Below are positions 1,748 through 23,500 of a stretch of DNA of 64,000 nucleotides, piece by piece; the stretch's first letter is position 1, and each line of letters begins with the position of its first letter. A model generated the notes under the pieces. The model had not been told where the DNA came from, ran no database searches, and worked only from the letters and a program-made list of their open reading frames with translations. Source of the stretch: Klebsormidium nitens (lineage: Eukaryota > Plantae > Klebsormidiophyceae); NCBI GenBank assembly GCA_000708835.1, contig DF237309.1, forward strand, positions 1 through 64,000. Direction: 5' to 3'. Made by a program: the position numbers and the translations under genes.

Positions 1748-4700
1748 TGGGCGTCTTCATGCACATCATGGCGAACACGACGCGGCTCTTCTGCCCCTCC
1801 GACAGCTCCGCGATCTTGGTCGTCTGCATCTTGCCCGTGATGCCGTAGCGACCGATGAACGCGCGCCACTCGTCCACGTCGCGGCTGAAGGTGGCGTTGT
1901 TGGGCCACGACCTCTGGAAGAACTCGAGCACGGCGCAGCTCTCGTCCAGCTGGTCCACGCTGTGCTGGTGGTACCGCCCGATTGAAAGGTGCGCGTGCCG
2001 GTTCACCTGCCCGCGCGTCGGCATCAGGTCGCCCGCCATCAGCTTGAGCAGCGTGGACTTGCCCGCGCCGTTGGGGCCCACCAGCGCGAGGCGGCTGTCG
2101 CAGTCGATGCCGAACTCCAGGTTGCGGTACAGCATGTCCTCCTCCTTGCCCGAGTACGAGAAGCTCACGTCCACGAACGGCAGCACCGGCGGCGGCAGCT
2201 TGTCGCAGTCGGGGAAGCGAAACTACACCAACAACACCCCAGACATTTAGTCGCCGGACCCATCCCATTAGTCAGGATGCAACTCACGCTGCGAGCTTGC
2301 CGGTTGAAAAGGAGAGGAACAGGCAGGTGAAGGCGTGAGCACCTTTACGGCCGGATGGCTGTTGCAACGAATCCTTGCTGCTAAGACCTCGTGCAGATAC
2401 ACACTTTCTGTCAGCGTTGAGAGTGGATATCAAGGACGAGACGTCGAGCGTGGCGTGCACATGTCAGCGGTTGAGAAGGATGGATCGTGGCTAGCTCTTA
2501 TATTTCCAGCTTATCAGCGTCTACATTATCAACAAGAACCATTCCATCATCCAGAAGAGTACAACCAGGTGGACATGCCACAAACAGCAGGTGGGTTTCA
2601 AAGCCGTTCTCAGCGCAAAGCGCGACGCAACGCCATAAACTTGATATGAAACAGCGCGCGTGGTGCGTTTACCTGGAAGGTCCTGCGCCGTTGGACGGGC
2701 GGCGTGAGGCCGGCGGCCTCCATCTTGTCGAGGATCTTCTGCTTGGACTTGGCCTGCTTCACCAGGTTGGCGAACGTGCCGCACGACGCGATGAAGGCCT
2801 TGATGTGCTTGATGTCGTCCTGCTCCTTCTCGTACTTCTTCTGCTGCACCGTCTCGTTCTCCGACACCGTCTTCATGAACGTGTCGTAGTTGCCCGAGTA
2901 GTACGTCAGCTTGCGCTCGGTGAGCCAGATGATGTTGGTGCACACGCCGTTCAGAAAGTCCTGGCTGTGGCTGATCAGCACCAGGCACTTGTTGTACGTC
3001 TTCAGGTACTCCTCCAGCCACACGCACGCCTCCAGGTCCAAGTGGTTCGTCGGCTCGTCCAGCAACTGCACGCACAAACACGCCGCACTGCGACCGCTCA
3101 GCACAGCAGTGCTAGGGGAGGTAGGGGCCAGGCCTCACAGAGTGCCCACTCAAGGTGCAGCCGAATCAATCAGCAGGGGCACAGACATGGCGGCGTAGCC
3201 CCCGAGAGGTTGTCAGATAACAAAGTGGGCCCATGCGCAAATGTTCACCTTGCCATCAACAAGCTCACGAAGCAACCCTGACAGGTTACAGCTTCAAGAA
3301 GCAAAGCAAAAGCCACCTATCATTGGCTATCCGTATTGAGCTCCGCTACCAACTTCTCAAAGCTGTGAATGCCCTCGCAGAAGCGGGACTGACCAGGAGG
3401 GTGGGCGCCGCGAAGAGCGCGCGCGCAAGGGCGACGCGCATGCGCCATCCTCCGGACATGTCCTTGGTGGCCTTGGCCATCATCTTAGTCCCAAAGCCCA
3501 GGCCGTGCAGCAGCTTGGACGCCTCCGCCTCAAACTGGTTCGGGTCCAGCGACTCCAGGCGCTCGTAGATCAGCTCCAGGCGCTCGTCCTCAGGGCCCGT
3601 TGTGCTCAGGATGTGCTCCTCCGCCGCGTTCAGCCGGCGCACCTCCTCCTTGATGTGGTCCACCACCGCCTGCACACAAGGCACCACGCCACTGCCACTC
3701 AATGACCCAGGTGGCGATGGTGGCACTCAAAGGTGCCTGTTCCCCCCAGGCAGGGACAGGCAGAAACGCTGCCACCCTCAGCCTGTTAAAACTGCTGCGC
3801 AGGGAGTACATACACCTAGCATAACCATCATCCTTATTGCCTCTGTAAACAGTCACTTTCACTGTCCAGTAACTTCAGCGAATGACGCAAGGAATGTGAC
3901 GACAGGAAGAATGACAGCAGGCATGCGACAAACGGCCTTGGGGCTGGTTACTCTGACACCCTGCCCCCTGCTGTGTCTCTCACCTCGAGCGCTGTCCTGT
4001 CGCTGGGCTCTGCCTCCTCGTGCAGGTGGTACAGGTCCATGTGATCGGGGATGGGCACCTGCAGGCACACACAGGCAGCACGTCACACCCCCGCTCGCTA
4101 AGCAGCAGCCCCCGCGCCTTTCTACTGTCTCAACTGTCTCAACCACACATCCTCTGAGTGTCGCAGTCTCAGACTAGCCCTCAGTCCAATCCTGCGAATC
4201 AGTGTCTGGCCGGCAGGCTTGCCACATGACATTAAGTGATTGCTGTGCAGTGAGCTCCTCACCTCGCGTGCTGCAAGGCATTGCAGGAAATTGGTCTTGC
4301 CCGACCCATTGGCTCCGATAAGGCCGTACCGCCGCCCGATGGTGAGCTCAATGGTGCAATCCTGGATGAGCTCCTGCCCATTGAGGCCCATGCTGAACCC
4401 ATCGATCTTGATGTCGCGCGACGTGGGCCGAGACGACAGCACCCCCGTCACTGTGCGCTGGTGGTGATCCGACTGAGGGAGAGGGCGGGGCGGGTCAGCC
4501 AAGGGATGCCAAGACAATTCGTACCACGAGCGAGAGGCAACCAACCAGAGGGCTCGACGTCGCAGCCGTAAGAAAAATGTTGGTAAGTGGACACCGAGTC
4601 AGTCAACATTCAAAGATTAGATAGCGTACAGTCAATATCAGACGCACCATCGCTTGATGGCAATCAGAATGACCAGATTGGTCACTTTCATGGTAATCCC

Positions 4701-8649: not shown

Positions 8650-10372
8650 GGACACGAAGTCGAATTTGACAACTGTTTTCATACAATCGTCAGCTCATCT
8701 CAGGTCTCCAAGAGCATGCCACTTCAATGTGTGAAGCGCAAGAATGACAGCCATCTTCATGTTCGAACCAAGATGAAGCTACTGCTATTGATCGATGATG
8801 AGGAGTTACGAGACTCGCAATTTCTTTGGGGTATGCGGGGTCGGAGGCTCTAGCAAAGGAGCATGGTTTGTAGCCGCGAGCAGCTATTCCTATCCTGCTT
8901 GTGCGCATCTTGGTATGTGACGGTCCCTGCCTAACATTCGCATTGCATACTAAACAGTCGTGCCACCAACATTGCATGTACAGCATATTGTGCATCCCGG
9001 ATCGATCGGGGCTCTGGCATGGGGTGTGCATGGTCGCATGCAATGTTTGAAATCTAGTCTGGTGAACATGGATTGGTAGCTAGTACGTCGATCAAATCCG
9101 ACTTTGCACATGGGCACTGCAGTCAGATCGATTCACTGAGTCAATGATAAGTTATAGCTGCAATTGTTTGCTGCCGCGCCGCGCGTGCATGAGCTATAGT
9201 GACAGCGACGAGCCTGACCTAGTGCAGTCATGCATGCTCAGCTGTATAGTTTTACACTTTTGTTGCAGCTAGTACCATGAGTCGCGCCAGCAATTAGTAT
9301 AGATAGCTATCTAGCTTGAAATTGCAATTACCGTAGTATTTGATCGACCAAGTATCTCGATCGTATACTCTATAAGCTGAACTTTGTAATTCAATGTTAC
9401 AGCCATGTCGCATTGAAATAAGCAAATCATTAATAGGCCTCCGCTCACAGCTCGTCTTGTTAAGAGTCATGGTATGGTCGATGGTACTGCTGTACATAGT
9501 GATATTGCTAGCTTGCTACCGTAACGTAAGCTCGAGTTCAATTGAACACAAAGCATGCCACATGCCATGGTGCAACTAAACCATTCCGTTCGCGGATGCA
9601 TGGCCGGTCAGCTCAGTCCGACTAGTCGGACGGTATACATCTGGCAAAATTTTCAATGCACGAGTGGCACCCAGCATGCATGCATATGATGTTTTGACAG
9701 TCACTTGAGATGCAAACAATTCCGAGTTGTATGCATTCAGTTTACAAGCTTTTAGCGTACAAGCAAGTGATGAGTGAGGTCAGACCAACCATCGAATAGT
9801 GTTAGCCGATTTGCTGACACAGACCAGACGTTTACACTTTCTAGACTCGAGACTACTAGCTTTCTAGACGTGGCTTGAATCCTGAGGACCGGTGTGCTCT
9901 TCCTCGCCGTCGTACTCGTCCTCATCCATCCCGGAAATCCGCTTAATTTGTTCTACATGGTCGTTGAGTGCAGTTTGCACAGGAAAGTCGCGCGAGAGCT
10001 CCAAGTCCATGCCTGCCAGCGAGGAAAAGTAACGCTTCAGAGCTCGAAGCTCGGGACTACGGTTCCAGATAGCAGGGCTGGTCAAAGCCCATGATAAAGC
10101 AGACATGCGAAGTCTACATGTAATCAAGAAAAGCCGCAGATCGGCTGTGGGGTTTTGCAGCAAAACTCAACACTAAACTGCAGGTCACCAGGTCTCTCTA
10201 CCACTTGTCTACTTGCTGTCCTACGCATTAGCAGCTCTCAAAGACCCTACGGTTGCACCCCCCCAGGCTTCCGTGCATCGGCAGTGTGCGGGGGCAAGGG
10301 GGCGCCTCACTCACCTCGGGGGGGAGCGAGACCAGCCAGCGCCCACCCTTGTGCTCTAGCGTGACCATGCAC

Positions 10373-13300
10373 TCAAACGGGGGCGTCTGGCTGCCTGCCC
10401 TCCCCCCCGGGTGCCGTGCCTAGCTCTACGTGCCCGGGGCCGCCCCCCTGCCCCTCGTGCAGCCAGACGTCGTCCTCCCAGTCCTGGTCCGTACCAAACT
10501 TTTGTGGCTGGTCCTCGTTGATGCGGCTGTACGCCTGGTCCTGGTCCGGCAGCACCACAATCGCAACGCGCCCCGTCTCGCGCGTCAGCAGGTAGTACAG
10601 CACGCCGAACACGACCGCCACCACCAGCTCAAACACGCCAAACGCCAAAAACTTGCCCGGCACCAGCGCGTGGTCGCTCCGCGCCTGCACCACCACCGCA
10701 CACAACGGCGTCAAGCGCAAGCGCAGTCAGATGGGAAAAGGGCAGGGGGAAGTGCAGAGGAGGGCCTTGTCGACCGCTCCTCATCGGCGGTCCACTTCTC
10801 TTTGCCTATCCAGCGAACCTGATATAGTCGTGCAGAGATGCGGACTTGCAATCTTTGCCCGAACAGGCAAGCTTTCTCGCAACTCGACTCCAGACCCAGA
10901 TTGTGTGCCTCTACGTTCACTCCGACAGTATGCGCGACGGTGCCCTGGACGTGCGCGCAGGGTCGGGGTGCTCACGGTGTAGATCTGGAAGATGCCCTGC
11001 ACAACCAGCTGGCCGGCCGTGTTGGTGGCAAAGAGCAGGATGTAGCGCGCCGTGCGCAGCGCCAGCGCGGACTGCGCCACCACCAGCGCGTACAGCGCCC
11101 ACGACAGCGCCGTCACGACCGTGAACAAAAAGTAGGCGAACCCCGTGCTGCCCGTCCGCGAGAGGAGCAGCGAACAAACGCCAATCTGAGGAGGGACAAG
11201 GGCAAAGGGCCTTCAGCGCCTGGCGGCAAGTCTTTGTTGGCAGCCGATGCAATCTATACAAGCGGACGAAGGGTCAACGTTGGATGAAATGAGCAGCAGC
11301 ACAAAGTTCGACAACTCCCAAAAGCCGTCGAGCCAGAACCATCCATTCGGCGAGGAGCAGCCATGCCGCCCGGCTGATAAGTACGCACCACAAGCGAGCC
11401 GACGATGTAGACGCCGCCGCCAGCGGACGCGGCGAGGCGGTTGAAGCGGATGAGGCTGAGCACGGCGAGCAGGGCGGCCGCGTTGGCCAGCACGTACACG
11501 AGCGACTGCGCGCGGTAGCCCGAGTAGGCGGGGCCGCCGTCCTCCACGCTGTAGTGGCTGAACAGCTCGCTCGCATGCGCCTGGATCAGCGGGCCCACCG
11601 CGCCGCCCAGCACCCACCTGCGCCCATAGCCACCCAGCGCCACGCTCAGACCAGCGTACTTAATTCTGCACTATAAAGGAGTTCCAGAGAATCACAAGCA
11701 GGCCCAACGTCGGCCATTGCAGGAGAAGAGCCCACCTCACACGCCAAGACCATTAGCGCACTGATTGGAGGTTACATCTCACCAGACTGAGAGGAGGCGC
11801 AGGTTCCGGTTTTGGTACGTCTCTTTAAGCGCCGCAAGGGGCCCCTCCTCCGGGTCGGTCAGCTTGAGGAGCGACGTGTTGCTGGACAGGTGGCTGTTGG
11901 GCTCGCGCGGGAACACGCACGCCAGAATGGCCGCCAACGTCACCTGGGGGAAATAGGGCGGTCGCTCCTGATGTCTGAGCCCTCGCGCTCCCATCAACAA
12001 AGTTGCAGAGCTCGAGTTGCACGGGATCGAATGCAGGTAGTCAAAAGCAGTGCAGCAATAATTCAGGTGGTGGAGGCGGCCTCACCGGTGCTAACGAGAT
12101 GAAAAGTAGGAGCAGGGTAGGGATGCCGATTCCCCGCAAGATGCTAGCTGCACGAGAACAAACAGCGACGTGTAAGAAGCACGTCGAGTTGTCAAGAATG
12201 TATTAGAGCTGCCCTGCGGACCTTGTAACATGGCAGCTGAATTGAAAGGCAAGGCGGCTTCTGAGGTTCCGCCAAAGACAACGCTGCCAGTGTTTATACG
12301 GGGACAATTCGGAAAGACCTGGTCAAGACGTGTTTCCAAGCGAAATCAACTCAGCTATTGCACATTTCATTAAACCTGGCCGCCTCAAGCAGGATCTGTC
12401 TCTGCCGCTCACAGAACTCAAGCCATCCGCTAAGTACGGCTAGGTTATTGGGCGGGCCGCTTCCGCATTTCTCTGGATTCGAAGTTTCGGATCGTGTGAC
12501 AAAGTTTGACAACGTGCACAGCAGTGAGTGTCAAGACGGTGCTGCCCCTCACTGAGCGCGGTGGCCATGATGACGGCTGCGAGGTGCGCCCCGATGGCCA
12601 CGCTGGTGATGAGCTGGAAGTTGCCCTCCGCCACCAGCAGGTACAGGAACGCCGCAAACGCCAGCGCGCCCGCAAACGACAGCCCATACGTCAGCTGGAG
12701 AACGGACGAAAGAAGGAACGTCAGAAGAAAACGGGCTGGGCCTGGGCCTGAACCTGGGGGATCCCTCACCTCCGTAATGAATCTGATGGTCTTGACGTCA
12801 GGTAAAAATATGATCTTGCTGCGCTCCGTATTTTAGGTATGCATGCTGGAGTTTGATGCTAGAGCGGCTACCTTCAAGAACCACATGTTTCCAGATCTCT
12901 AGCACGACACTACAGCATGCTCTATCACATAGCGGCCTCCTTGTCTTGCTCGGAACCGACAGAGTAGCGGCTTACCTGCATGAGGGCGTCGGTGAGGAAG
13001 GACGTGCCGTACATGACGATGACCTGCGTGAAGATAGCCGCCACCGCCCCTGCAGCCATCACCGGCGAGTGCATCACACGTCTGCGGCGAGACCTGCCCT
13101 CAGGCCACACAGTGACTGCACCAAAACCGCAGTAACCGACCTTCGGCGCAACTCGGCTCTCATACGTTTTCGAAACACGTGCAATCCGCTGATGTGAGTC
13201 AAAATCCAGGGGCAGCGGGGAGGAGCCAATTCCAAAGTGCCCATCGCAGTCACCTTTGACAGCCCTAGTGTGAGAGCCTGGGCAAAGCGCTGCTCACCGA

Positions 13301-15333
13301 CAATGATGACCGACTTGTAGCTGAAGTATTCGGCGGCAGGCGCAGCCGCCACGGCGAAGAGCAACACGGTGAAGATGCTGACGGGGAAGTTGCGCGAGTC
13401 CACCACCTGGGGAGGAGCGATCCGCTGGAGGAAACCCCCCTGCAAGCACATTTGCAAGAACAGTTGAGAACAGACGAAACCTAAACTTGGTCTATCCAGG
13501 ATTAGAGCAGAAGCCTGATGTATGCTTGATCAAGTGCATTTCCAAGGGCCAACGACAATGGTCGCACTCGCACTAGCTTTTCACCCTTGATGACATAACT
13601 ATTGTAGACAGGGAAAATGACTCTGTTTTTCATATGGACTTGTTGCTTTTTTGCCACCCGTCCGCATGGGACCGCCAAACTGAAAAGAGGACGATCTGGT
13701 CTTGATGTCGGGTGAACATGCCACACACCGTTGTGTTTGCGGGCGGTGGGGCGGCGATGGCCTCCGGGGCCAGCTGCGTGACGCGGATGGCGTTGGCGAG
13801 CCCCCCGTCGTCCTTGAAGCCGTCCTCTGGCGCGGCGTGCAGGAACTGGATGAGCAGGTGGTGATCCGCCACCGCCGTCTTGGCGGTGTACGTGTATGCA
13901 GTCAGGCGGCCCCCCGCGCGCTCGACCAGGTCGATGGGCCCCTCCACGGGGTTATCCTGCACGCAGCAGGACAAGCGCTTAACGACTTGGCAGCACCAGA
14001 TGTGTAGACGACGAAGTTTACTGACCATCTGTAACCCCTCTGCAACTCAGCACCTGTCACATATTGAGGCGTGTGTACCAAGCAGCTCTATTAACGCATG
14101 TCACATTCAGGCAGATCGTGGCGCTAGGTGCCCCAGACAGTGCGCTCACCTGGACCTGGATGTAGAAGCCGCGGTCCTTGGGCTCCTGCCACCAGCTCTC
14201 GGCCATGTCAATGGACACCTCATACAGGCCGTTCTCCAGGTACGGCAGCGTGTAGTTGAACGCGCCCCACCGCTCTGTCCAGTACAGCTGCGGGTCCGCC
14301 GTGTTGTTCACGTCCCCTTCGGTCAACCGCACACTGGTCCAGTTGGCGGTCGTGTACTGCGCGTTCTCCTGTGTGTAAAACCTGCCAAGCGCACCACATG
14401 ATGGGTGAGCTCTCCAACTGTCCTGCGGCACATCATCAGAGACCTCCTAGCATGGATACACGGCCAAGCCTGAATCTCCACTCGAGGCGTCTCTCAGTAT
14501 TTGCCCCTGAAAAGGTGCATTGTCCGGGCCACACTCTCCTGAGGGCCCATGATGATTTAACCGCAGGGCCTGCAGAAGTCGCCCCGCAGCAATCAAACAT
14601 GTTGCACACACAATTGTCTACCCAGCTTTTTCGTCTGGGCTTCATGTTCTGCATGCTGACACTGGCGGGGCGGAGTGATGGCGCATCCCTCAACCATCAC
14701 AGTACCCTGGCAAGAATGTCTAAGATCTGACCCTCACCCGTCGGGCATATACACCACCCCATCAGTGGCAGTGTACGCGTGGTCGTCGGCCACATTGAGG
14801 GCATACCCCTTCCTGTAGGCCTCTACTGGAGCAGGGGCGGGGGCGTGCGCCGCCAGGTATGCGCTCCGAGAGTATGTGGAGTGGGGCTTCAGATACTGCA
14901 CGTGTGGATTGGGTTGAATTCACAGGATGCCAGGAACACATCACAAGCCGTCGATCAGCCATTTGCTAATGCATCTAGTCAGGAAGTGGAATTGTCGATG
15001 GTGGTGATGAACGTGACACAAACTTGCACGAGGATAGATTCCACGAGGATAGATTCGAAAATTCTGTAGTAACCAACGCAATCCTGAAAGCACCACATGT
15101 GAGCACAACGGGAAGAATACGACGTAGCAATCCGCGCGTGGTTGTACTCTTACCTGGACTGCATTCGGCTGCTGCGGCCGGATCTGCAGCAGGAACACAA
15201 AGGCCCCGAGCAGCAGCAGAATGCGCACCAACTGCTTGTCCAGGCCCAGGTTGGGGCGATCCAGGCCCAGGCGCTCGGCCGCGCGGTCAATGCCGCGCAT
15301 CACGCTCTGCGCCGTGGCTGAGTCCTCCTCCAT
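10373..15333 (-). CDS. SLC19/reduced folate-thiamine carrier family transporter with a malectin domain inserted between TM1 and TM2; 3' end uncertain (may extend to 9864)
   Basis: Exon 1 ends LLLLGAFVFLLQIRPQQPNAVQ. Exons at 14895-14739, 14381-14150 and 13956-13729 encode a malectin-like domain (YALNVADDHAYTATDG...TADPQLYWTERWGAFNYTLP.L.NG.Y.VSIDMAE...R.F...LLIQF...ANAIRV). Then FPVSIFTVLLF...EYFSYKSVIIVG, LMQLTYGLSFAG...FQLITSV, LRLLSVWWALALGGY and AYSGY, all matching recalled SLC19A motifs; many hydrophobic helices. Confidence 0.85.
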
Positions 15334-17086
15334 GGCGACAAGCTGCAGGTGGCGACACCATCACGCAGATCTAAGCAGTCTACTTGGAAGGAGCAACAAT
15401 CGCAAGTGACATGACAGAGGCATCATTCACCGTGCGGACTACCATCAAGCCCGTATTTGTCGCAAATCCATGCTCAAACGTCCACCACCACACAAAAGTT
15501 GAGGCCCAGCGTGCCCTCAACTAGATCCATGTTGACTCCTGATGGTAGACAGGATAGGCATGTTAAGTGTGCCCAAGGGACCACCCCAAAACAAAATGTT
15601 GAACACAAGACACGACAACATTAAAATGATCAAGTCCCCTCTCTGTCAATGAGCAATAAACGAGAGGCGCTGGACAGCTTGCGTACAAAGTGGAGTCCAA
15701 ACTATTGTCAATGAGCAACAACCTCTGCATATACGAACCGCACCAAAGCTCGAGGAGAAGCTATGATCCACCTAAACCATCTGACATGCAGGAGATCTGT
15801 GACCAGCTTCAGCGGACCGATCGACCCAATCTAAAGGGGAGAACTGCTGAGATTTGTCTTGGAAACTGCTCGAGGACACAACGCGAAGGGTCAGCATCAT
15901 CCTTTCAAGTGAAAAACAGACTCAGTAAGGCACCGCTCATCTTGCTTCATCCCATGCTTCTGCAGCTACAAAGTTTGAAAAGATCTGGGTAGGTATTAGC
16001 AGACCGTACATACCTTGAGAAGCAAGCCTCCTCGGGTATGAGGAAAAGGCCAGACCCTCTACCGGAATGCCTCAGGGTTCTGGTCTACCTATGGGTAAGC
16101 ACTTCAAAGCGGCCGGAAGCTCACAGCGTTTACCTGACTTCCTCGAGTCTCTCCGCAGTTGCATCTACCCAGGTCCTAGCTCATTGCTTCTCAGGAGGTA
16201 GGTGAAAGTAGTGAGTAGTGCAATGACTGTGCATGTGACTCAATCGCCTCCACTTGAACTTTGCACAATGCAAATTGCAACTCATGTCTCTTCCATCTGC
16301 ACACTCGTGAGCGTTCTTTACGGAAAGCCGCACGATGTCTCTCTTTGACGGGTCCCGGGAGTACGAACATCTGCACGTGCCAAATCACACGTGAACTTTG
16401 GGCAAATCTGGAGAAGAGGTCTCTTCTCAAAATTCAAATAGGCCAATGGCAAAGGCTTCTTATGACACACAATTGAATGTCTATGTTCGTCGAAACTCGA
16501 TGCATGTTGAGTTGCTTGCTTCCACAACCGTCAACATCAGTGACAGATCGTCTAAGTATGATTCCATGGTGTATTGACCGATTCCACTGCGGGCTCATGA
16601 CCGGCACACTAGATCATGATGGCTACATGTCTGATTTGATATTTGAGATAATCTTGCAGTCCCAATGAGCACCTAGTATAGCCACTCTTAGCGAGGGCAT
16701 CACTGTCACCCCGTGTCTGCCGGAGATCTTGTTCAGGCCATGGCCCAAAGTGCGTAAGGGCTTCGACGATGACATTTAAACATTGCATTGCTATAATGAT
16801 GTAGTCAAACCATCATACACTATGGTACCTTGCGTCAGATTGATACCATTCTTCCGGTAAGTACAGGCTACATGTGGCTAGTCAAATGGGCAACTAGAAC
16901 AGCACTAATTAGCCGGCGGAGCGTAAAGGTAACATGTTAAGGTGGCCAGAACGACACAGCATGTGTTACTACCTCGATGTACATGATGCAAAGCGCGGCA
17001 CACGCTTGCAACATTCAGAAGAAAGATTGATGACGGAAAGAGACAATCGTAGACATATCAGGTTCGACGAGCTCAAGCACTGCAAA

Positions 17087-20596: not shown

Positions 20597-23500
20597 GTGG
20601 AGGAAACGGCATCTCCACCCGGAACCAAGGCAGGCACGGGGATGGCAGCAGATGGCAGCCGGCCGGATCGCTCGATTCTCTGGGAGGGGGCCGTGCCGGT
20701 GGCGCCGGGGCTGGCCTACCTGGGGTCTACGAACGCGGGGTTCGATCCGCAGGTTCTCAAAGATCGGCATGTGCCGATCTTTGAGATGCCCCCCGGCTTC
20801 TTCCCCGCTCACCACAAGCACGGGCCCCCTCCAAGCGCTGCCGCTACGACAAAGCCGGGAAACTCCAAAGGCCCATCTGGCAAGGCAAAGAAAGGAGGCG
20901 CCAAAGCGGCGGCCAAAGCGTCGGAGGCTAGCGGGCCATTGCAAAGCAAGCCTGCTGCTGCCCCTGCTCACCATGGCAAGACGCCCTCTAACGGGCCACC
21001 GAAGCCTGCTGTGTCTGAGTCAGCTGAAAGGTCGGACTCGGGCACGCCTGCGAGCGTTCCCTTTTCGCAGCCTGCAATCCAGGCTCGGAAGCTGACGGAG
21101 AGCGAGGCGCGTGAACTGGAGAGGCAAGCTGCGGCGACCAGGATCGACTACAGCAAGTGGGCGGCCATAGTGGACAGCGACGATGAGAGGAGCGGAGGGG
21201 GGGGGGTCGGGGCAGGACGAGGGAGGAGCTTCGGACGATGAAGTGGACGAATACGGCTGGGTGTTTGACGAGGATGTGGGGCATAACGTGTGGTCCACAA
21301 CGGGCAGGACGATCAAGCGCAGCGAGGCAATCGCGCGCGGCCAGACGGTCTGCCGGCCAGGAAAGGGCGGCAAGGAGAAGCGGAGGAACTACGTGATGCC
21401 AGAGTTTGGGAGTGTGGACTTCTTTGAGCATATGGCGAGGTGGAGCATGTCAGCAGAGGGGAAAGCCGCCCTTGCCGCGCAGGCACAGGCCTCAGACAGA
21501 GGGCCCGACGCGGATGAGGACCACGAGGAGGGGGCCAACACTGAGGGGGGAGGGAAGCAGGGGCAGGCGAGTAGCAGAAGTCAGACCGATGGAACCGCGG
21601 CAGCAAAGGGGAGGCCAATCGATTACAGCAAGTGGGACGCGTTTGAGGACAGTGATGACGAGCGTGAGAGGGCGGCGGCGCAAGGGAAGGGGTGCTGCCG
21701 GCACTGCAAGTGCTGCTACCCAGACGGGAATGACTCGGACTCGGAGTGCAGCGACGACGGGCATGACCACCGCCACCGGCAAGTGCACACAGTGCCGGGG
21801 AGGACGCGCGACGATTCCCCAGAGCCGCGCAGCGATGCCGCTCCCAAGACGCGGGGGCGAGGCATGCGAGGTGTTGGGGGTAGAGGAGCGGGGGAGCCGC
21901 CTCCGTCTCGTGCTCCACGGGCTGGTCTCGCGAGTGTCGGCGAAGGTTCGAAGCATGAGAAGGAACGCGCTGTGGGGATTAAAGAAAGTGAGAGCGCAGC
22001 CAAGAAGCCGGGCCTCAAGGGCGGCTTCTTTGCGCCCAAGGCCGCAGCAAAGGCAACTGAAGAAGCGCCAGGGAGGAGTGGGAAGGAGGCGGGGGATGCG
22101 GGTTCGCAGAAGCCGTCTGTGGACGACCTGCGGATCTATCACAAGCTGGGGGGAACTGCGAAGCCCTTGACGGCCTTCCCGCTCAAGAGTCCAGAGGAGC
22201 AGGAGAACTGGTGGATGTACATTGTGAGACTCGCCGGGGCTGACCATCAATCTTCCGTCTGTGCCTTTCGAAAAAGTCCAAGTTTAACACACCAAATCTG
22301 CACAGCTGGAATGTTCCGATTTCTTGTCAGGGCGCCAGTCGTTCTTGCCCACTTCATCCTTTCCTATCTGCTTTGCGCAACAGATGACGACCGCTCTGCA
22401 CGTATTTGACAGTAAACTCGTGCTGACGTCCATGGACGTACTACTTGTGATTCTTCCCGGATAACCACACCGTGCGAATGGTCGTTCGTTCATAACTGAC
22501 GTGCTTACGAGTTTCCACCTGATGCAGCATTCGGACGGCCGGCTCTACTTCGTGCGTGCTGGCAGCTCCGGGCTGGGCACGTGGTGGAAGCCGGAGGAGC
22601 TGCTCGACGTCACTGAGGCCCCGACGGGTGAGCTTCCGCCAGCATGGTGGAAGCTCAAGCAACTTGACGCTCTGAACCCATCTATGCACTTGCGTCTTGT
22701 CTCAGCATGGAGACAATCAGGGCTTTTGCAGTCGCTTTCAATAGTGTCAGCTTCTTAGCGAGGAGTGTGTTTGCCCCATTCCTTCGTTGCCTTGAGCCTC
22801 TTATTTTCACCGAGATCGATCTCGTGTTGAACGATAGCTTTGTGGGCATCCGCCCATCCCCGCCCCCTCCTCTCGGCCCAGTCTGCGCCCCTTGTGCCCC
22901 AGCCACTGACGTAATCGCATGTGTCCGGCGCAGGGTGGCAGGAGCTGTACGACAAGACGGGCCGCGTGTATTACTACCACGCCGCCTCGGGCTGCTCGCT
23001 GGACACAATTCCCGACGACCTGGCCGTGGCGCGCTTCTCGTGGCCGGGCCGGAACGGCAGCGGCCCCCGAATGGACCTCATGGCGGAGGCGGCCTGGCAC
23101 GACATCTGCAAGCACGCGCGCGGGGCGGCCACGCGGGTGAGCTCGCGCGGGGGGCGGACATGCAAAGCTGAGCCGGAGGGGGCAAGGCTAACCCAGGATA
23201 CTCTCAAGATGCGATCATACACCTACTCTCTGGCCGGCTTTGCGACGGCGTGCTCGATCATCCCAGTTTCGCTGCATTGCTCTCATTTGCTGGCCCAAAA
23301 CGGCGGGAGCTCCGACTGAGTGTGGTGTGTTTCAATCCGCAGGAGGAGGCTGCGGAGCGCGCAATCGCGTCCATGCGCTTCTCGCGCTTCTTCCCCGCGG
23401 GCCTCGACCCCGCGTCCTTGCCGGGCCTGCAGGACACCATCCGCAAGCGCATGCACGCCGAGTGGCCCGCCTGCTGCGAGGAAGGCGAGCAACCGGGGTT

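Follow-up and report, generated by a model that had tools for sequence, protein, structure and literature searches.

The analysed window, a stretch of 64,000 nucleotides from Klebsormidium nitens contig DF237309.1, carries on its minus strand a well-expressed and conserved gene of this alga, whose product combines a 12-helix SLC19 carrier with a malectin domain lodged in the first loop of that carrier. On balance, we favor the reading that this single gene product still moves a small solute, probably not thiamine, and that its lectin binds a glycan and thereby serves to tether, gate or feed the carrier. In the literature searched we found no paper on a malectin domain inside loop 1 of an SLC19 carrier; a 2021 review of malectin architectures has no occurrence of the word ‘transporter’ (PMC8287233), and one survey describes SLC19 as ‘mainly present in animals’ (PMC3058773). 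The claim in the earlier note that the architecture was not described thus stands for the searched literature but not for the databases, as the protein is present in NCBI and UniRef with both Pfam domains on record.

The gene consists of 13 coding exons and a 5′UTR exon, with the coding sequence running from 15333 to 9864 and the main isoform comprising 718 amino acids. All 12 coding junctions are of the GT..AG type and were recovered in RNA contigs (four runs from four studies), bearing out the continuous spliced frame that had been proposed, here placed on the minus strand. Single RNA contigs (X8 record 14, 2264 nt; X9 record 18, 2251 nt) reach from 10494 to beyond 15344 and span exons 1–12; thus, one and the same mRNA carries both the malectin and the carrier exons. 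The RNA contigs jump from 15344 to letters at 16016, placing the 5′UTR exon at 16016..16246 on the minus strand (its upstream end is approximate); X9 record 18 extends 231 nt beyond 15344 on this side, and the start ATG (15333) is preceded by an in-frame TAG. The 718-residue model is 100% identical to residues 19–736 of P0155, the publicly available K. nitens protein, whose 18-residue N-terminal extension is doubtful; its automatic annotation in NCBI reads ‘major facilitator superfamily protein related folate carrier activity [Klebsormidium nitens]’.

Exon 1 (15154..15344; this and all the following features are on the minus strand) encodes the cytoplasmic N-terminus and TM1 (aa 1–60) and has a QIRPQQ motif at its end. 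TM1 ends ...LLQIRPQQPNAVQ|YLK as had been claimed, the hydropathy peak lies at aa 35–53, the exon shows 100% amino acid identity in L003 (the ortholog from a congener) and L004, and the junction 15154|14895 was found in four runs. The next three exons encode an Ala/Pro linker and the malectin domain, again in keeping with the earlier description: exon 2 (14738..14895, aa 61–113; RNA junctions) supplies the linker and the start of the domain, exon 3 (14150..14381, aa 113–190) its core with the sequons NWT, NNT and NYT, and exon 4 (13729..13956, aa 191–266; RNA junctions) its C-terminal half and a linker with the sequon NTT. The domain itself, as delimited by Pfam, AlphaFold and structural matching, covers aa 88–253, corresponding to 13768..14814 with two introns included. 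Exon 5 (13298..13439, aa 267–314) encodes the end of the linker and TM2; its start had been put at 13406 and is corrected to 13439 by the joint 13439|13729 in RNA contigs of four runs and by the same residues in L007, a cDNA-like contig from a related alga, which adds 11 residues (GGFLQRIAPPQ) between ANTT and VVDSRN.

The remaining helices are encoded by exon 6 (12976..13049, aa 314–338, TM3; RNA junctions and alignment), whose last residue, Q338, aligns with Glu110 of SLC19A3, exon 7 (12553..12694, aa 339–386, TM4–TM5; profile scores of the exon alone) with Y341 equivalent to SLC19A3 Tyr113, exon 8 (12086..12147, aa 386–406, part of TM5/TM6; RNA junctions), and exon 9 (11783..11943, aa 407–460, TM6 and the central cytoplasmic loop; RNA junctions), which shows 98% amino acid identity in L003. 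Exon 10 (11389..11617, aa 460–536, TM7–TM8) is joined at 11617|11783 and aligned via a profile to SLC19A2 302–380; the TM7 segment WWALALGGY read earlier is absent from the mRNA, in which TM7 is LRLLSVWWVLGGAV from the acceptor 11617. Exon 11 (10976..11185, aa 537–606; RNA junctions and SLC19A2 profile alignment) encodes TM9–TM11 and exon 12 (10495..10684, aa 607–670; RNA junctions) TM12 and the start of the cytoplasmic tail. A C-terminus at 10373 does not hold for the main isoform, in which a splice from 10495 to 10012 (depth 106–178) leads into exon 13 (9864..10012), encoding an acidic C-terminal tail that L003, L007 and P0155 share, with its stop TAG at 9866–9864, outside the range claimed earlier. 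Retention of this intron (10373..10494; unspliced contigs 10314–10523) instead yields a less abundant 709-aa isoform with an alternative tail ending in TGA at 10375–10373, and the alternative-tail ORF is kept in L003. A second joint, 10315 to 10012, is also seen in RNA contigs at the 3′ end.

As the earlier note had anticipated, P0155 is recognized by both Malectin (PF11721; 74.2 bits, residues 109–248) and Folate_carrier (PF01770; 72.2 bits, E 4.4e-20, in two stretches), well above the gathering cut-offs of 23 and 27 bits, with the corresponding scores for L007 being 78.3 and 74.7 bits and exon 3 alone giving 47.6 bits for Malectin. The AlphaFold model shows a malectin fold with pLDDT of about 95 over aa 88–255. 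Foldseek placed human malectin first (9ikp_A, E 4e-11, TM 0.67 by target), ahead of malectin-like portions of beta-glucuronidases from Bacteroides and the ectodomains of FERONIA/ANXUR; Xenopus malectin (2jwp) scored E 3e-6. At the sequence level, exon 3 aligns to Xenopus malectin (2jwp/2k46), and no malectin of known structure was recovered by a sequence search with exon 4. The insert comes closest in sequence to secreted proteins of bacteria that carry 2–9 malectin repeats (about 40% identity, as against 17% for human malectin), the local alignments to bacterial malectin domains beginning at aa 75–100. The ligand contacts of Xenopus malectin are Tyr67, Glu87, Tyr89, Tyr116, Phe117 and Asp186 (as quoted in PMC13335976); of these six, two could be aligned, with an inferred numbering offset, namely Tyr67 and Tyr89, whose equivalents are both kept, and the Glu near 87 is not kept. 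The positions of Tyr116, Phe117 and Asp186 fall in exon 4. Of the four sequons in the insert, three are shared with both L003 and L007; the fourth, NNT, is shared with L003 only.

The top match to an ER lectin and the two retained ligand tyrosines raise the alternative that this is an ER or Golgi protein, in which a lumenal malectin reads glucosylated N-glycans like animal malectin and the SLC19-like part is an anchor or a mover of a lumenal metabolite. In topological terms the lumen is the same side of the membrane as the cell exterior (PMC8287233), and the cytoplasmic tail, as read from the sequence, has a YSRI motif and an acidic DEDEYDGEEE cluster that are possible sorting signals. However, the insert is nearer to the secreted bacterial multi-malectin proteins than to human malectin, there is no KDEL- or KKxx-type end, and in a paralog (see below) the two malectins are borne by a long stalk rich in Pro, which would suit reaching into a cell wall. 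Though these points are not decisive, we regard such a residence as unlikely.

The membership of the membrane part in the SLC19 family is indicated by searches with L007, an 81%-identical ortholog of the K. nitens protein, for which all 12 PDB matches listed are human SLC19A3 (E 1.9e-14), SLC19A1 (6e-8) or SLC19A2 (9e-8). L007 residues 286–427 and 448–644 align to SLC19A3 54–196 and 268–463, i.e., collinearly over both six-helix halves after the insert, and in the K. nitens gene the SLC19A3 alignment begins in exon 5. Exon 7 alone gives 15.7 bits for PF01770 and 11.8 bits for TIGR00806, the five best PDB matches to its profile are all SLC19A3, and a profile including K. nitens exons 10 and 11 matches SLC19A2 at E 8e-4. 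L007 scores 57 bits against TIGR00806, far below the RFC equivalog cut-off of 227.4 bits; on these scores, the carrier classifies as a member of the PF01770 family and not as an RFC equivalog. Hydropathy and the structure model concur in predicting 12 hydrophobic or helical segments with a central loop (model helices 33–50, 284–301, 307–327, 332–360, 364–390, 396–416, 440–482, 494–519, 526–545, 550–575, 579–608 and 615–643). Of the two halves for which a fold had been anticipated, the model confirms only the insert: the carrier half has pLDDT 40–60 and pTM 0.40, and its 3D packing is of low confidence, so that the model does not by itself place the lectin over the pore. TM1 could not be aligned to SLC19 chains by any tool tried and the best PF01770 stretch begins at profile position 42, after the insert; hence, its R52-P-Q-Q55 may be compared with the pocket-lining Arg29..Glu32 segment of SLC19A3 only at the level of a motif, in which Gln would take the place of Glu.

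We compared 11 thiamine-contact positions of SLC19A3, namely Phe56, Trp59, Thr93, Trp94, Leu97, Val109, Glu110, Tyr113, Asn297, Glu320 and the partner Lys380 (for their roles see PMC11686366). In a gap-free alignment three of the 11 are kept (F56 as F284, T93 as T321 and Y113 as Y341), V325 and M337 are conservative changes, and six are lost (W59 to S287, W94 to Q322, E110 to Q338, N297 to A473, E320 to V500 and K380 to T561). The pocket residues of L003 are the same as in K. nitens, as are those of L007 save for Ile at Phe56 and Pro at Glu320. A role in vitamin B1 uptake is thus doubtful, given the few contacts kept and the substitution of Glu110, Glu320 and Lys380 by uncharged residues, and no TPP riboswitch was found in the introns or UTRs of the gene. 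These results leave the vitamin, anion or cyclic-dinucleotide carrier proposed earlier unsupported. They also weigh on the alternative of an ordinary thiamine- or folate-type vitamin importer with the lectin as an accessory for glycan anchoring or stability: family membership, the three kept contacts and the public name (albeit automatic) speak for it, whereas the eight differing contacts, including both Trp positions, the vacant riboswitch search and the shortfall from the RFC cut-off make it distinctly improbable.

The gene has close counterparts in related algae. In L003 the division into 13 exons is identical and the 718-aa ORF is intact, at 93% identity; L007, an intronless metatranscriptome contig with the same architecture, matches model residues 1–718 in one tblastn HSP at 80.6% identity. 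Between K. nitens and L003 dN/dS is 0.16 overall, 0.20 in the malectin part (dS 0.53) and 0.13 in the carrier, whose helices are 96% identical, values that show purifying selection on both parts. A second, paralogous type, found in two related assemblies (P0147/L005 and P0151/L006), is arranged as TM1, two malectins, a Pro-rich stalk and then the carrier exons, with the TM7–11 exon scoring 43 and 35 bits against PF01770. Thus, there is a small family with one-malectin and two-malectin forms in Klebsormidium and its close relatives.

The pattern of constraint bears on a further alternative, a non-transporting sensor or ‘transceptor’, in which glycan on the lectin shifts the conformation of the carrier to signal via the cytoplasmic tails. 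A remodelled pocket and two alternative tails, both conserved in the congener, would suit it, and plant malectin-type ectodomains work in wall sensing (PMC8287233). Yet Pfam finds only its two families on P0155, with no signalling domain or known partner motif, and the stronger constraint on the carrier helices than on the lectin fits an active transporter at least equally; we consider such a sensor very unlikely. Finally, an artefactual fusion of two adjacent genes, arising from mis-splicing, from an assembly error or from a faulty gene model, can practically be dismissed, as the junctions are identical in four independent studies, the exon structure is identical in the congener, a full-length cDNA-like contig without introns comes from another alga, neither half would be complete as a lone protein with TM1 preceding the insert and TM2–12 following it, and we found nothing in its support, the sole model error being the N-terminal extension in the public annotation.

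We accordingly return to the solute carrier with a lectin in loop 1. Major-facilitator carriers have both protein ends in the cytoplasm; hence, the insert should face the cell exterior or the secretory lumen. The short TM1–TM2 connection appears to have been replaced by about 225 residues, comprising the Ala/Pro linker, the complete malectin domain (a beta-sandwich that binds glucans or glycans) with its conserved N-glycosylation sequons, and a second linker, and the insert would start right after the helix-1 segment that in human SLC19 carriers lines the substrate pocket near the outer face. The carrier part may still transport a small solute by the usual rocker-switch; thiamine is an improbable candidate for it, since uncharged residues have mostly replaced the aromatic and acidic contacts seen in SLC19A3. 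The lectin may bind a wall or N-linked glycan, thereby tethering, gating or feeding the carrier. A more specific version, which we offer as a possibility of rather low probability, is that Klebsormidium-type algae have turned the SLC19 fold to a new, lectin-assisted use: the malectin domain would sit where the outward-open funnel begins, capture a ligand derived from glucan or glycan out of the wall or medium, and either hand it over or gate the carrier by the state of the wall; the receiving pocket would then be uncharged and sugar-porter-like, with Gln, Gln, Ser and Thr replacing Glu, Trp and Lys. If so, the system would parallel, in a eukaryote, the uptake that depends on binding proteins or would be, with wall-state gating, a wall-integrity sensor on a transporter instead of a kinase.

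Among known systems, human SLC19A1–3 share with the K. nitens protein the PF01770 domain (72 bits), the 12 helices and the central loop, and SLC19A3 in particular the collinear match over TM2–TM6 and TM7–TM12 and the equivalents of Asp75 (as Glu), Tyr79, Lys80 (EYFSYK) and Tyr113. The algal protein differs from them in having most thiamine contacts replaced, in its host being a streptophyte alga, and in the TM1–TM2 connection, which in SLC19A3 takes about 20 residues (Glu32 to residue 54) and here about 225 with a folded lectin. The same PF11721 beta-sandwich occurs in animal ER malectin (9ikp, 2k46) and in malectin-like portions of glycoside hydrolases from bacteria; whereas animal malectin has a signal peptide and one C-terminal anchor, the algal domain is anchored on either side, by helix 1 and by helix 2 of the carrier. 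Membership in the animal ER malectin family was rejected in view of this position between the first two helices of a 12-helix protein. FERONIA/ANXUR and LRR-malectin kinases such as CORK1/IGP1 likewise present a malectin-type ectodomain at a streptophyte membrane, and the ANX1/2 and FER ectodomains match the insert structurally at E about 1e-9; however, these receptors are single-pass kinases, whereas our protein has no kinase and a transporter as its membrane part, and the CrRLK1L receptors have tandem ‘malectin-like’ PF12819 domains rather than a single PF11721. Other MFS carriers, too, have large glycosylated or folded domains in their outer loops, namely in loop 1 of the SLC22 OCT/OAT transporters (i.e., likewise between TM1 and TM2), between TM9 and TM10 of PepT1/2, and as the luminal domain of SV2; to our knowledge, these inserts include no recognised lectin or carbohydrate-binding module, nor does any of them occur in the SLC19 family. 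A further close system is the two-malectin paralog of the same family, which has the same ending of TM1 (LQARPPQQ), likewise carries malectin in loop 1 and continues into the same carrier exons, but is about 30–33% identical to the K. nitens gene, has its two malectins and a Pro-rich stalk of roughly 120 residues all in one exon, and keeps Asn-Tyr at SLC19A2 Asn314-Tyr315, where the one-malectin gene has Ala-His.

The minus-strand gene encodes, on a single mRNA and in one conserved open reading frame, an SLC19-family (Folate_carrier, PF01770) carrier with a complete malectin fold (PF11721) in the loop between TM1 and TM2. The first model of this gene was built manually from GT/AG sites on the minus strand, and public RNA was then used as its test. 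Of the words sampled from the 4961-base stretch, 20 RNA runs contained one-third to one-half, which is approximately its exonic share. RNA contigs from four runs, each of a different study, were placed on window positions 9900-15800, and all coding junctions were seen in every one of the four, their CT..AC ends being GT..AG when read on the gene's strand. One contig each of the RNA runs X8 (record 14, 2264 nt) and X9 (record 18, 2251 nt) starts at 10494, takes in all exons and continues past 15344; hence, the malectin and carrier exons share one mRNA, bearing out the single spliced frame proposed in the earlier note.

That frame stood, whereas three of its details were revised by the RNA. Exon 5 starts at 13439, contributing 11 residues more than the earlier text; the TM7 acceptor lies at 11617, with TM7 reading WWVLGGAV (an alternative Cys-containing acceptor at 11646 is ruled out by the RNA); and the dominant 3' form splices from 10495 to 10012 and ends at a TAG at 9866-9864, giving a product of 718 residues. 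The TGA originally taken as the stop belongs to a less abundant retained-intron form of 709 residues. The segment 10012-10495 (minus strand) thus displays three 3' forms, namely the main splice, a splice from 10315 to 10012 falling within the 3'UTR of the retained-intron form, and the unspliced form, and the C-terminal tails that result are of two kinds, both acidic. In the congener ortholog (L003) the ORF of the retained-intron tail is nearly unchanged, and given this conservation both tails may be functional. At the other end, the 5'UTR exon extends as far as 16016; when this exon is read as contiguous, the start codon at 15333 has an in-frame TAG ahead of it. The public K. nitens protein of this gene, P0155, starts 18 residues earlier (MQLRRDSRKS...) through a further small intron that its model takes out of the 5'UTR exon, within 15345-16330 (minus strand); the RNA contigs were placed up to 15800. 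The cDNA-like metatranscriptome ortholog L007 likewise shows a stop ahead of its ATG, so this N-terminal extension looks like an annotation artefact.

L007 (Ga0315919_1002022, 2469 nt) emerged when metagenome contigs were scanned with one of the conserved carrier exons; exon 3 as the query gave no match. It aligns with the 718-residue model in one tblastn segment without introns, at 80.6% identity, and is thus a cDNA-like contig of a related alga; both the exon 5 residues and the exon 13 tail of the model are present in it. When the carrier region of L007 was the query of a word-index search, one protein was returned, P0155 (736 aa; NCBI, UniRef and EukProt). Its database name is 'major facilitator superfamily protein related folate carrier activity [Klebsormidium nitens]', and its record lists precomputed PF01770 and PF11721 domains. 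P0155 matches the 718-residue model exactly over its residues 19-736, and the gene is therefore already in the public annotation under an automatic name. Elsewhere in the window, the longest ATG ORF of the first 27 kb lies at 21183-22409 (plus strand, 408 aa), and its exact product is absent from the gene-position index.

Both domains expected from profile searches were recovered on P0155 above their cut-offs: Malectin with 74.2 bits over residues 109-248, equivalent to 91-230 of the model (cut-off 23), and Folate_carrier with 72.2 bits over two separate stretches, of which the first spans profile positions 42-188 (cut-off 27). The corresponding scores on L007 are 78.3 and 74.7 bits. TIGR00806, the equivalog model of the reduced folate carrier (RFC), reaches 57 bits on L007 against a cut-off of 227, indicating a member of the family and not an RFC equivalent. 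All 12 of the solved-structure sequence matches of L007 are SLC19 proteins (SLC19A3, E 1.9e-14; SLC19A1, 6e-8; SLC19A2, 9e-8), and their alignments form two collinear stretches beginning directly after the insert. Exon-by-exon Pfam/NCBIfam searches gave weak Folate_carrier matches, on exon 7 only, and neither SLC19 nor malectin structures were matched in phmmer searches of the PDB with exons 7, 10, 11 and 4 singly and with a TM1 profile, blanks that stem from the size of the pieces and not from absence. In the ESM Atlas, exon 10 retrieved generic MFS fragments and exon 3 malectin clusters; exon 7 retrieved nothing, and no fused malectin-carrier cluster was found with any of the three.

The AlphaFold model, computed from a shallow alignment of 30 rows consisting mainly of malectin segments, is confident only over the insert (pLDDT ~95 over aa 88-255), whereas the carrier half, at 40-60, was used for the twelve-helix count only. 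In the structural comparison the model fits human malectin best (9ikp_A, E 4e-11, TM 0.67 by target). After it come the malectin-like parts of Bacteroides beta-glucuronidases, the ectodomains of ANXUR and FERONIA, and Xenopus malectin. Sequence comparison puts the insert closest, among full-length proteins, to secreted bacterial proteins that contain several malectin repeats (best 150 of 911 matches). The carrier part occurs in none of the best 150 of 911 exon 3 matches in this exhaustive representative search; P0155 is unlisted there too, despite its 100% identity to the exon 3 query, so that blanks in this search do not amount to absence for proteins of this genome.

Major-facilitator carriers have both termini in the cytoplasm and loop 1 on the opposite side; hence, an insert in loop 1 faces the exterior or the lumen. 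The retention of its sequons fits this orientation: three of the four are kept in both L003 and L007, and NNT is kept in L003 only. The first SLC19A3 alignment block runs without gaps from SLC19A3 residue 54. For TM1 against the SLC19 chains, the TM1 profile and PDB phmmer produced no alignment, and R52-P-Q-Q55 would place a Gln at the position of SLC19A3 Glu32 by motif only. With the RPQQ correspondence so drawn, the lectin would adjoin the pocket-lining segment of helix 1.

The substrate pocket of the thiamine transporters SLC19A2/A3 lies near the extracellular side, mainly in the N-domain, and comprises Glu32 in the unwound part of TM1, Phe56, Trp59, Thr93, Trp94, Leu97, Val109, Glu110, Tyr113, Asn297 and Glu320, the last held by Lys380 in SLC19A3 (PMC11686366). 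We transferred these residues to the K. nitens protein through the SLC19A3 alignment. Three are retained (Phe56 as F284, Thr93 as T321 and Tyr113 as Y341) and two conservatively replaced (Leu97 by V325 and Val109 by M337), whereas Trp59, Trp94, Glu110, Asn297, Glu320 and Lys380 are lost to S287, Q322, Q338, A473, V500 and T561, respectively. The orthologs are the same at the pocket positions, save for L007 with Ile at Phe56 and Pro at Glu320. These substitutions remove most of the acidic and aromatic character by which cationic thiamine is selected. The gene's UTRs and introns contain no TPP or other riboswitch and no other Rfam family; an HCV_5BSL1 match at 10294-10353 (minus strand; 21 bits, cut-off 44; E 0.44) is at chance level. 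On this sequence evidence a role in thiamine transport, which the earlier note had entertained, is disfavoured. The note's reading of the architecture is supported by the transcript and domain results.

The carrier part may still transport a small solute, probably one other than thiamine. The putative ligand-binding lectin would bind a glucan or glycan and so tether, gate or feed the carrier. The main rival places the protein in the ER or Golgi, in a quality-control type role; the insert would then face the lumen, and the evidence is compatible with either an ER or a plasma-membrane location.

The architecture is conserved beyond K. nitens. L003, a 14.9-kb Logan contig from run SRR23617307, shares all 13 exons, each bounded by GT-AG, and its 718-residue ORF is intact, at 93% identity. 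Against it, dN/dS is 0.16 for the whole protein, 0.20 for the malectin domain (where dS is 0.53) and 0.13 for TM2-TM12, indicating that both parts are under purifying selection, with non-synonymous change ~4x faster in the lectin. L001 and L004 are partial orthologs. A third, more distant copy of exons 1-4 (45-65% identity) lies at L002:1019-4035, in the assembly of L004 (ENA ERZ26165376); its TM1 end is without the QIRP motif, no TM2 was found in the 2.6 kb downstream, and 3493-4035 contains a degraded piece of malectin sequence interrupted by stop codons. This copy may have become a pseudogene, or it may encode another kind of malectin protein with a single membrane pass.

A second type, with two malectin domains, is represented by P0147 (JGI contig L005) and P0151 (L006, from the run of L003). 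In both, one exon encodes a TM1 ending in LQARPPQQ, two malectin domains and a Pro-rich stalk, with carrier exons downstream; the single TM7-TM11 exon of this type scores 43 and 35 bits with PF01770. A synaptobrevin/longin gene lies ~6.5 kb upstream of this paralog in the JGI contig (L005:2694-3077) and in the Klebsormidium-like Logan contig (L006:3543-3914), and this conserved neighbourhood suggests a fairly close relationship for the JGI organism. Word-index searches with P0147, the L007 carrier region and P0155 found P0151 and P0155 as the only real relatives, and the few weak P0147 matches cover only 11-35% of the query; this index requires shared exact words and scores 8000 candidates only. 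The family is small, comes in one- and two-lectin forms and is apparently limited to Klebsormidium and close relatives, so that gain and loss of the insert should be traceable.

Malectin and the carrier are each well known, and their union in one chain is undescribed in the literature searched: no paper pairs 'malectin' with 'folate carrier' or SLC19 with Klebsormidium, and neither of the two pairing 'malectin' with 'MFS transporter' has a title on such a fusion. The earlier suggestion of an undescribed architecture thus holds for that literature, though the protein itself was already public with both domains. The word 'transporter' is absent from a review published in 2021 that covers malectin and malectin-like architectures (PMC8287233), and a survey of SLC families describes SLC19 as 'mainly present in animals' (PMC3058773). 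The protein offers an SLC19-family member with a rebuilt pocket in the plant lineage and a natural test case for an outside domain controlling or feeding a major-facilitator carrier. It also adds a transporter to the malectin-bearing surface proteins of the algae related to land plants, a setting in which malectin-type domains are otherwise tied to cell-wall sensing.
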